Shown here piece by piece: positions 48,996 through 51,917 of a DNA stretch of 64,000 nucleotides (its first letter is position 1; every line of letters begins with the position of its first letter). The DNA comes from Trichosphaerium sp. ATCC 40318. Its lineage: Eukaryota > Protista > Tubulinea. The stretch lies in NCBI GenBank assembly GCA_038496445.1, contig JALMLS010000540.1, positions 62,001 to 126,000 of the forward strand, given 5' to 3'. A program made the translations under genes and the position numbers. The notes under the pieces were generated by a model. It was not told the DNA's origin. It saw only the letters and a program-made list of their open reading frames with translations, and did no database searches.

Positions 48996-51917
48996 ATGCG
49001 ATTCAATACCTGCTTCATTTCTTGGCACGCCAATGATGAATCTGATAGTCTACCAGTGTTTTCAATAGACTGGCATTCATCTGGGCGTATTGCTACCGGT
49101 GGGGCTGATTTTACCGTTAAGGTTAATAAAAAATTGAATATGTATTTGCTGACGCGTGTAGGTATGGAAATGCGTCAAAAAAGAAAAAGGTACAGGCGTT
49201 GAATTTTTAGCAAACCTTAAAAGGCATACAAAATGCGTAAACGTGGTTCGCTTTTCTCCAGACGGTACGTATTCAGTTTCGTTGATCAATACTTTTCAAA
49301 AAGAAACCAACAAACTGTTTTAGGTAAATACCTTGCGTCTGCATCAGATGGTACGTATCCTTAACGCAATAAAAACAAAAAATAACGTTTAACAAGACGG
49401 AACAATTCTACTTTGGAAACTCGATCCAAACGCAGCGAAATCCACGTTAGATAAGGACTTAGCCATGAACAAAGAAACTTGGGTTGTTGCCAAGTCATTT
49501 AGGTATGATTACCGTCGTTAAAACACGTGTTATGTTTTTTGTTGACGATTTTAAACTCTTTTCGTTTTTTGATGTTTGACAGTTACATAGGTCAATGGGA
49601 GGTGTTGAAGTTTATGATATATGCTGGTCTCCTAACTCTAGATACTTATTATCAGGTTGTGTAGATAATACAGCGTGCATGTGGGACGTGAATACAGGTA
49701 CACGTTTTACGTTAAGAAATATTTAACTGACTGAAAAAAATCAAAAAAGGTCGATCTAAACAGATATTTTCGGATCATACGCACTATGTACAAGGTATGT
49801 CTACATCCATTTATAAAAATAAAATATTCCCAAGCAGAATAAAACCCACCTTGGTTCAGAATAAATTAAAAAAACTTACACTTTTTTTTTAACAGGCGTT
49901 TCTTGGGATCCTAGAGGGAATTATCTAGTTACGCAGAGCTCTGACCAAACAGCCCGATTATACAAACGTAAAGCCACAAGTGGTAAAGCGAAGCGTTCAG
50001 ATGTATTCAGATGTTGTGGTGTTGTCCAAAAGAGAGTTATATACGAGGTTTGCATTAAACTTCTTTTTTTTTGAAAAAACTCGTTTCACAAAAAATTTCG
50101 AATAACGTTCTCTCCAGGCGTCACAAAAGAACCCAAGTGCTACTACTACACAAACACCACAAAAGCCAAAATCCCATAACATGTTCTACAATGAGACAGC
50201 ATCAACGTAATGAGCTCATCAGTAACACTCGTAAAATTTTCTCATTTTTTTCCTTTTAGATTTTTCAGACGACCTTGTTGGTCTCCAGAAGGAAGCTTGT
50301 TATTCTTCCCAACTGCTAAATTTTTAAAGCTCTCTTCGTCTTCTGACGAAACTGCACCTCAGACTACTGAAGACACTCCTAAGAAGCGCTCTCGTGCACA
50401 AGGAGAGTACATAAACGCTACTTACGCATACGCACGTCAAGCCCTTGGAGGCACAGCCGAGGCAAGAAGGTACGTTCTATAAGGACCTCAAGAGAAATAT
50501 TTTCTCATTTCTCCGTTTTCTAGGCCTGCGATTTGTATTCCATCGCCTGAAGTTGTTACAACATGCGTACGATGCAATCCTATTCTTTTTAAACTCAAAG
50601 GTATGATTTTTTGCACGTCTACGCGAAGAAAATATTAAAAAAAGACTCTAGAAGGCACTACACCTGTATTTGGCCTTAAATATCGTATTGTTTTCGCTGT
50701 AAGCACGTTAACGTCGGTTTACATCTACGATACTCAACATAAACATCCTATCGCTGCATTTGCTAATATACACTACGCTGCAATCACAGACATGGTTTGG
50801 TACGTATTTTTATCCAACAGTTTCGCTTTTAAGCCTTTTCTTCTACATTTCCTCATTTCGCTTATTTCGACCCAACCACTTGCAAAAATGTTTTCTGAAC
50901 TCATGGATACGGCCATACAACCATGAAAACTCCGTGTCTCTTTCCGAACCGCGAAGATAAGCATGGTATGGCCCTGCCAGTACTTGGGTCCGTGAGGACC
51001 AGGGAACGTAGGGTGCTGTATTCATTTTGCTTTTTTTTCCTCTTTTCGAGTTCTACAACTACTGTAGCACGTGCTGTTCGCTACTACAACATACACTCAA
51101 GTTATTATACACTGCCGTTTTCTTTATGTGAACTTTTTTTACGTCAATCTTTTTCTTGATAGTTTTGACGTCTTGTTTCAGGTCTGAAGATGGATCTCTT
51201 CTAGGTATTAGTTCCTCGGATGGTTATTGCTCATTTGCTGTATTTGATGAAGGAGAGTTAGGCGATGCACTTCCTCAACAAGGTACACAAATCATTTTTT
51301 TATTACCGCCATCAAAAAACAAGAAATAAGAATCTCGTAAGGAATACTGTTTATTAACGGATTCTCCAGAGGTTGATGCTATCATGAGCTTCAAGAAGGA
51401 GATGCTCGCAGAGCAGACACCAAGAAAATCGCAAGCCCAAACACCTACAGCATCATCACCTTTAAAGCGTGTTGTACCTCAATCTCCTACATCGAACCCA
51501 TTAAAGCGTAAACTAAGCTTTAACGACTCTCAATCAAACAATGGAGGTAGTGCAAAGAAGATAAGACGTATACAGCCTACACTCATTACAAGACCACCTC
51601 AATCATCAAGCGATGCCGTAACACCTATTGGATCTCTTCCTTTGAATGGAGGAGCTTTCGGACATTCTTTGAAGCCTCAAGCTGTCTCTAAAGGCCCTAG
51701 GCGCATACAACCTACACTCATCAGTACTCCACTCAATGTACCTTCAGGAGGTCAAGCATCTGCTGATGCACCACAATCTAATGCTCCAAGACGTATACAG
51801 CCTACACTCATTAGTGCTCCTCTCAATGCATCTCCAGGAGGTCAAGTAGCCTCCACTGACGAAGCAAAATCAAATCCTCCAAGACGTATACAACCTACCC
51901 TTATTATTCTGGATTAA
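48996..51917 (+). CDS. CHAF1B: chromatin assembly factor 1 subunit B (p60/Cac2): WD40 repeats plus C-terminal B-domain motifs; multi-exon
   Basis: ISWH...[62 protein letters not shown]...SSSDGYCS, and RRIQPTLI four times. Confidence 0.9.
50905..51023 (+). rRNA. 5S rRNA: 5S rRNA gene, intronic
   Basis: 119 nt. The 5' GGATACGGC pairs with the 3' GCTGTATTC (helix I). It has CCATAC, CCGAAC in loop C, box A-like AAGATAAGC, loop E AGTA/GGAA and a GGTCC-GTGA-GGACC hairpin, and is followed by T-runs. Confidence 0.93.
51025..51038 (+). terminator. Pol III oligo-T terminator of the 5S gene
   Basis: TTTTGCTTTTTTTT, starting 1 nt after the 5S 3' end. Confidence 0.75.

Follow-up and report, generated by a model that had tools for sequence, protein, structure and literature searches.

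The DNA examined here, referred to as the window, is a stretch of 64,000 nucleotides (nt) of Trichosphaerium sp. ATCC 40318 (assembly GCA_038496445.1, contig JALMLS010000540.1, positions 62,001 to 126,000, forward strand). It carries a 5S ribosomal RNA (rRNA) gene within an intron of the gene for the p60 subunit of the chromatin-assembly factor CAF-1, so that a predicted transcription unit of RNA polymerase III (Pol III) lies inside a gene of RNA polymerase II (Pol II). A first-pass annotation of the window had described this nesting and had suggested that 5S genes may be dispersed into introns in this lineage, in nested units that might couple or interfere. The locus is built from the following features, all on the plus strand and numbered by position in the window.

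50601..50651, +: adjoining ordinary intron, 51 nt (GT..AG, frame continuity)
50652..50799, +: CAF-1 p60 exon before the 5S intron, ending with the TG of a split Trp codon (PF24105, CHAF1B)
50800..51181, +: phase-2 GT..AG spliceosomal intron of 382 nt housing the 5S unit (flanking exons contiguous in CHAF1B and in the Pfam profile)
50864..50889, +: conserved upstream block, ACCAC core and A-rich TATA-like box, putative Pol III promoter (conservation in 22 copies)
50905..51023, +: 5S rRNA gene, 119 nt (RF00001, three-arm fold, identity to 23 copies; the Rfam match ends at 51024)
51024..51038, +: Pol III-type terminator consisting of A, T4, GC and T8 (read from the sequence; conserved in all copies)
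51182..51282, +: CAF-1 p60 exon after the 5S intron, starting with the G that completes the Trp codon (PF24105, CHAF1B)
51283..51369, +: adjoining ordinary intron, 87 nt (GT..AG, frame continuity)
51370..51917, +: last host exon, a tail with four PRRIQPTLI repeats (PF09453 HIRA_B, E 6.6e-8; open reading frame listing)

The 5S gene and its host intron

The only Rfam match in the 64 kb window was the 5S gene. RF00001 was matched at 50905-51024 (+) with 93.7 bits against a gathering score of 38 (E 5.6e-19), and the alignment covers the model in full length (positions 1-120), which agrees with the complete 119-nt same-strand gene originally annotated at 50905-51023. When the 119-nt RNA was folded alone, its minimum free energy structure showed the three-arm shape of a 5S rRNA (-44 kcal/mol, z -2.7). 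All helices of the three-way structure had been described as paired; the overall fold stands, except that the Rfam alignment contains one non-canonical pair, an A-A mismatch at model pair 25-53. A loop C of 13 nt had also been regarded as unusual, and this view has to be given up: helix III and loop C contain no insertions or deletions relative to the Rfam consensus, in which the same segment, counted in the same way, also measures 13 nt. The oligo-T terminator was found where expected, as T4 at 51025-51028 and T8 at 51031-51038. We take the gene's internal control region (box A, intermediate element and box C, with TFIIIA) to resemble that of the Xenopus gene.

The splice sites of the 5S intron are GT at 50800-50801 and AG at 51180-51181. 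Host exons were searched singly, and for that reason each piece scores below the whole-protein cut-off. The translation of 50663-50797 matched profile positions 312-355 of PF24105, the CAF1B/HIR1 propeller (E 5.5e-15), and residues 311-352 of human CHAF1B among the sequences of solved structures (E 6.7e-7), while the translation of 51183-51281 matched profile positions 358-383 (E 7.2e-6) and CHAF1B residues 355-385 (E 4.1e-6). The final residue of the upstream piece corresponds to CHAF1B 353 and the split codon TG|G to W354, with no residue missing or extra, as the annotation of a GT..AG intron splitting a Trp codon had implied. Since the exon matches meet at CHAF1B 353/W354/355, removal of 50800-51181 restores the conserved protein exactly. 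The reading frame of the upstream exon, if continued into the intron, meets a stop after 50923. With 382 nt compared with 51 and 87 nt for its neighbours in the same gene, the 5S intron is 4-7 times longer, again in line with the first description. This exon homology confirms, at the level of the predicted gene structure, that the CAF-1 p60 gene has a genuine spliceosomal intron here and that the 5S unit sits in it co-directionally.

The identity of the host is supported over five exon pieces that match PF24105 in order (profile positions 1-47, 132-166, 239-259, 312-355 and 358-383). Three of these matches are clear (E 5.5e-15, 6.3e-12 and 7.2e-6) and two are weak (1-47, E 0.02; 239-259, E 0.063). 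For both exons flanking the 5S intron, human CHAF1B was the only significant match among the solved-structure sequences. The gene ends shortly past the propeller with a tail of HIRA_B-type motifs. Judged by these matches, the host gene is CAF-1 subunit B (p60), nearer to CHAF1B than to HIRA. Its tail (window 51384-51917, +) consists of four tandem PRRIQPTLI(S/T/I) motifs (PF09453 HIRA_B, E 6.6e-8). We assume that these are probably ASF1-binding sites, presumably more of them than in the human protein.

Dispersed 5S units across the assembly

When the complete assembly (70 Mb) was searched with the covariance model, 32 matches above the RF00001 cut-off were obtained, located on different contigs or far apart, and a BLAST census with the 176-nt unit scored 33 candidates, which proved to be the same 32 units and one fragment. 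Neither the covariance search nor the BLAST census revealed a tandem 5S array in the assembly. The ribosomal DNA (rDNA), traced by 19 identical 5.8S matches that lie mostly at contig ends, adjoins no 5S gene, and no rDNA-linked 5S was found in the assembly. Altogether 24 copies, including the one in the CAF-1 p60 gene, are 100% identical over the 119 nt; in the remaining copies, either one or two positions are substituted, 3 nt are deleted, or 19 nt are duplicated internally. The approximately 32 dispersed units together appear to make up the 5S gene complement of the organism.

The 24 identical copies, 22 of which are independent, were aligned on the RNA start. The region from about -41 to -14 is near-invariant, with an A-rich box after the core CGACC(A/C)AACCAC, and CTAAT directly precedes +1. 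Downstream, the tail ATTTTGC-T8 is conserved in all copies. Beyond the unit the flanks are unrelated, except in one trio of segmental duplicates. Exact matches to the core pattern in the genome all lie upstream of 5S genes (12 of 12), and matches with one mismatch are elsewhere no commoner than those of a reversed-pattern control. We infer that the upstream block is a putative 5S-specific Pol III promoter element. Because this promoter-like block and the terminator are both conserved, each copy would be transcribed on its own, and the pattern indicates autonomous Pol III transcription throughout the family. The gene in the CAF-1 p60 intron is most likely of the working type and would form a self-contained Pol III unit of about 175 nt.

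That the RNA is identical over its full length amid unrelated flanks indicates that selection or gene conversion maintains the copies, as would be expected of working genes. This bears on the possibility that the CAF-1 p60 copy, and perhaps most intronic copies, are silent, the RNA being made from a few privileged copies or from an unassembled array. Tandem repeats are often collapsed in assemblies, decayed copies do exist in small number (with the 3-nt deletion, with the 19-nt internal duplication, and the one fragment), and intronic tRNA genes of C. elegans that lie on the host strand have lower Pol III occupancy (PMC4999229). Silent copies should nevertheless have drifted as the flanks have, whereas the CAF-1 p60 copy matches 23 others over 119 nt in unrelated surroundings and keeps its promoter block and terminator, and the assembly holds neither an array nor an rDNA-linked 5S gene. 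We therefore regard silence of these copies as very improbable. The first-pass annotation had itself named a diverged, silent copy next to a normal array as the outcome that would overturn its proposal; what we found at the locus was the majority sequence with both flanking signals, and no array in the assembly.

The decayed copies were also located individually. The same 19-nt internal duplication is present in three of them (C199:8565-8703, C252:41589-41727 and C252:61245-61383), the 3-nt deletion, which lies in helix II, in one (C130:132764-132880), and the fragment comprises 58 nt (C8:131281-131338). Both the upstream block and the T-run tail persist in the four full-length decayed copies for which flanks were read or aligned.

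Long flanks are common to some copies, namely L024, L025, L027 and L028 (contigs C511, C293 and C356) and L019, L021 and L023 (C128, C182 and C221). The shared flanks include host exons, of an SH3-PH gene in L024/L025 and of an AAA ATPase gene in the L019 trio, and on C356 two 5S copies lie 2 kb apart in inverted orientation. Such copies represent segmental duplicates or haplotigs, from which it follows that the number of 5S genes can increase together with the host.

Hosts and orientation of the 5S units

For the 22 independent identical copies, stop-free stretches on each side of the unit were scanned against Pfam and the solved-structure sequences. A homology-supported host exon on the same strand was found at 15 of the 22 loci, on both sides of the unit at seven and on one side at eight, and no antisense host was found. 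The hosts are as follows.

L018, 5S strand: CAF1B, support on both sides
L022, 5S strand: NIF phosphatase (profile 2-37 and 66-126), both sides
L003, 5S strand: SNF2, both sides
L004, 5S strand: ABCE1, both sides
L001, 5S strand: CYFIP, both sides
L024, 5S strand: SH3 then PH, both sides
L009, 5S strand: EST1 then EST1_DNA_bind (second match weak), both sides
L007, 5S strand: MIF4G, one side
L008, 5S strand: NMD3, one side
L010, 5S strand: TRAPPC13, one side
L011, 5S strand: DIL, one side
L013, 5S strand: RBD, one side
L015, 5S strand: kinase (Pkinase), one side
L017, 5S strand: MA3, one side
L019, 5S strand: AAA, one side

As an antisense control, the longest antisense stretches at the ten loci then without a host were searched, and one of 20 pieces matched Pfam. 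This lone match, in L016, lies over 840 nt from the 5S gene and belongs to a neighbouring Arf gene, not to a host. It is a single-exon-like Arf GTPase gene (L016:2464-3081, -; PF00025, E 2.5e-60), located 0.85-1.5 kb downstream of the 5S gene on the opposite strand.

That all 15 determinable hosts lie on one strand corresponds to p ~6e-5 in a two-sided sign test. A strict donor motif within 170 nt upstream of the unit was present in the sense direction at 11 of 22 loci, compared with two of 22 in the antisense direction, and the 5S unit usually starts 60-120 nt past a donor site. Variant 5S copies were likewise found near sense-strand exons, of a RasGEF and of an Aladin-like WD protein. Homology of the surrounding exons thus shows that the 5S copies are, as predicted gene structures, mostly intronic and co-oriented with their hosts. 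The dispersal of 5S genes into introns of Pol II genes, which had been extrapolated from the single locus in the window, is borne out by 32 scattered units and by the same-strand host exons at 15 of 22 loci.

Other routes to assigning hosts were tried and dropped. The length of open frames was too noisy as a guide to the host strand since the exons are short, a rule-based GT..AG intron finder failed at the known locus itself, where it selected an incorrect splice pair, and a codon-usage coding score derived from long open reading frames had only 4,652 training codons and discriminated poorly.

Strict co-orientation is what would be expected if the 5S RNA were cut from the intron of the Pol II host pre-mRNA after splicing. 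Intronic small nucleolar RNAs (snoRNAs), which would be the model for this, have no promoter and terminator of their own. The 5S units resemble them as small structured RNAs in sense orientation within an intron of a housekeeping gene, and differ in retaining a conserved promoter-like block and a terminator: at every copy the upstream block ends about 14 nt before the RNA start, and every copy has the T4/T8 tail. These two elements count against intron processing because neither serves it, and the transcription rate that 5S supply needs is unlikely to be reached by genes such as CAF-1 p60 or a carboxy-terminal domain (CTD) phosphatase. The contrast with intronic tRNA genes of C. elegans, only 56% of which are co-oriented with the host (PMC4999229), remains in favour of a pre-mRNA origin, which we nonetheless consider highly unlikely.

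The layout could also be a by-product of spread, for example if a 5S-bearing intron reverse-spliced into other transcripts and was copied back into the genome as a sense intron. The unit is indeed always accompanied by its upstream promoter, always in sense orientation, and usually 60-120 nt past a donor. Since the upstream promoter always travels with the unit, mature 5S RNA cannot simply have been retroposed. As for spread of whole introns, the introns share no sequence outside the ~175-nt unit, target-site duplications around the unit were not found beyond shuffled expectation, and flanks are shared solely among segmental duplicates, in which host exons are included. An intron-borne origin of the layout therefore seems extremely unlikely to us.

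Other Pol III genes and the rDNA

The donor motif was also used as a proxy for nesting of other Pol III genes. For tRNA genes it gave a mixed picture, being found three times in sense and twice in antisense direction in 24 contexts. For U6 genes it was found never in sense and once in antisense direction in four contexts, with no sign of nesting. Among the Pol III genes compared (5S, tRNA and U6), the consistent sense-nesting pattern belongs to the 5S genes.

At least 16 U6 genes lie above the cut-off. Six U6 loci (L031-L036) have a long conserved upstream region in common, from about -90 to -1, which contains a AAAACCACAAT element at around -60 and, at around -30, a TTTAAAAAT box. This region and the 5S upstream block both include the ACCAC core, which may represent a Pol III promoter element shared by U6 and 5S genes. 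Among the tRNA loci L038-L041, L043-L046 and L052-L057, several genes lie in repeated units with near-identical flanks of at least 100 nt. Such units represent either tRNA-derived elements or dispersed repeats that contain tRNA genes.

The 5.8S-like matches score 27.8 bits against an Rfam cut-off of 42, and the 5.8S is considered divergent because of this score. On two contigs the matches form inverted pairs with a spacing of about 15 kb (C469, 2000-2163 + and 16581-16744 -; C481, 3207-3370 + and 19658-19821 -), and the others are spread over 15 further contigs, in 13 cases near a contig end. In total, 15 of the 19 matches lie within about 5-9 kb of the contig start or high up the contig, which suggests that the rDNA units are subtelomeric or palindromic.

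Proposed mechanism and significance

Our preferred interpretation, which we consider probable on the genomic evidence, is that the window contains an autonomous Pol III 5S gene nested co-directionally in a Pol II intron, and that it belongs to a family of ~32 units that are mostly or all placed in this way, their hosts being unrelated housekeeping genes. Pol III would start at 50905 under the control of the upstream block and the internal elements and would stop in the T4/T8 runs, while Pol II would read through the unit and the intron would be spliced out together with the 5S sequence. Selection would maintain co-orientation, for instance because the two polymerases could otherwise collide head-on; avoiding a pre-mRNA antisense to an abundant RNA could be an alternative selective pressure.

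Several considerations weigh against this interpretation. The promoter role of the upstream block is deduced from its conservation. That all copies are intronic is an extrapolation, with seven of the 22 loci having no homology-supported host and eight having support on one side. A collapsed or unassembled 5S array may still lie behind the assembly. Finally, by analogy with reported cases (PMC7328520; PMC3261910), a busy Pol III gene would be expected to hinder the Pol II gene around it, a cost for which the preferred interpretation does not account.

A different relationship between 5S genes and hosts, which we consider unlikely, is that 5S expression depends on the hosts, either because Pol II passage and splicing keep the units open for Pol III or because spliced introns release part of the 5S RNA. 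If so, the strict co-orientation would be functional and more than tolerated, and the supply of 5S RNA would be tied to a group of housekeeping Pol II genes, among them several with roles in the quality control of ribosomes and mRNA (ABCE1, NMD3, UPF2-like and SMG/EST1-like).

Pol III genes within Pol II genes usually count as accidents with the potential to block their hosts, and 5S genes are usually pictured in arrays or standing free. If autonomous, co-directional nesting is the correct interpretation, apparently the whole 5S complement of a eukaryote lies mostly in introns, oriented with the hosts and equipped with a putative dedicated upstream promoter. The organism would thus offer a natural system of about 25 independent loci for studying the sharing of one template between Pol II and a Pol III unit in heavy use. 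With the same loci one could examine whether nesting is made tolerable by co-orientation and whether the 5S output is set by transcription of the host.

Comparison with known systems

A full-text literature search, which left most subscription journals outside its coverage, yielded no description of functional 5S genes that reside in introns. Among public metagenome contigs, none matched the pattern of promoter plus 5S, and a looser 5' pattern was found in three, none of which carries a 5S gene; neither scan yielded a relative.

Scattered 5S genes are described as rare, and Neurospora crassa, Schizosaccharomyces pombe and Acanthamoeba castellanii are listed as having them (PMC1635290). The 5S genes described here resemble those of the three species in being single and dispersed, neither arrayed nor located in the rDNA. 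They differ in that the genes of those species are described as scattered and not as intronic, whereas here the determinable hosts are protein-coding genes on the same strand. Another unusual route to expression of scattered 5S genes is described for Yarrowia lipolytica, where dicistronic tRNA-5S genes have the 5S gene fused behind a tRNA gene and use the tRNA promoter (PMC2566860). In Trichosphaerium, each 5S gene has its own upstream block and no tRNA gene in front.

Intronic Pol III genes have likewise been documented. In C. elegans, 44% of the tRNA genes are intronic, which is no more than expected by chance, 56% are oriented with the host, and the expression of intronic tRNA genes is influenced by host promoters (PMC4999229). 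The 5S units are similarly predicted to be autonomous Pol III genes inside introns of Pol II genes; they differ in that all 15 determinable hosts are co-oriented and in their class, 5S genes having a type 1 promoter, here with an upstream block in addition. In the first intron of mouse Polr3e, an antisense MIR short interspersed nuclear element (SINE) occupied by Pol III hinders Pol II (PMC7328520). Nucleolar association and Rorb expression were tested with a transgene array of 5S rDNA placed in Rorb's first intron, and the title of that paper reports nucleolar association and transcriptional inhibition through 5S rDNA (PMC3261910). Both cases share with the present one a Pol III unit inside an intron of a Pol II gene, and they show that nesting of this kind can impede Pol II or bring the locus to the nucleolus. 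They are single, antisense or artificial, and repressive, whereas the arrangement described here is natural, repeated and sense-oriented. Dispersed 5S genes and intronic Pol III genes are thus each already known; what appears to be new is the layout that combines them, with dispersed 5S genes placed in host-oriented introns.

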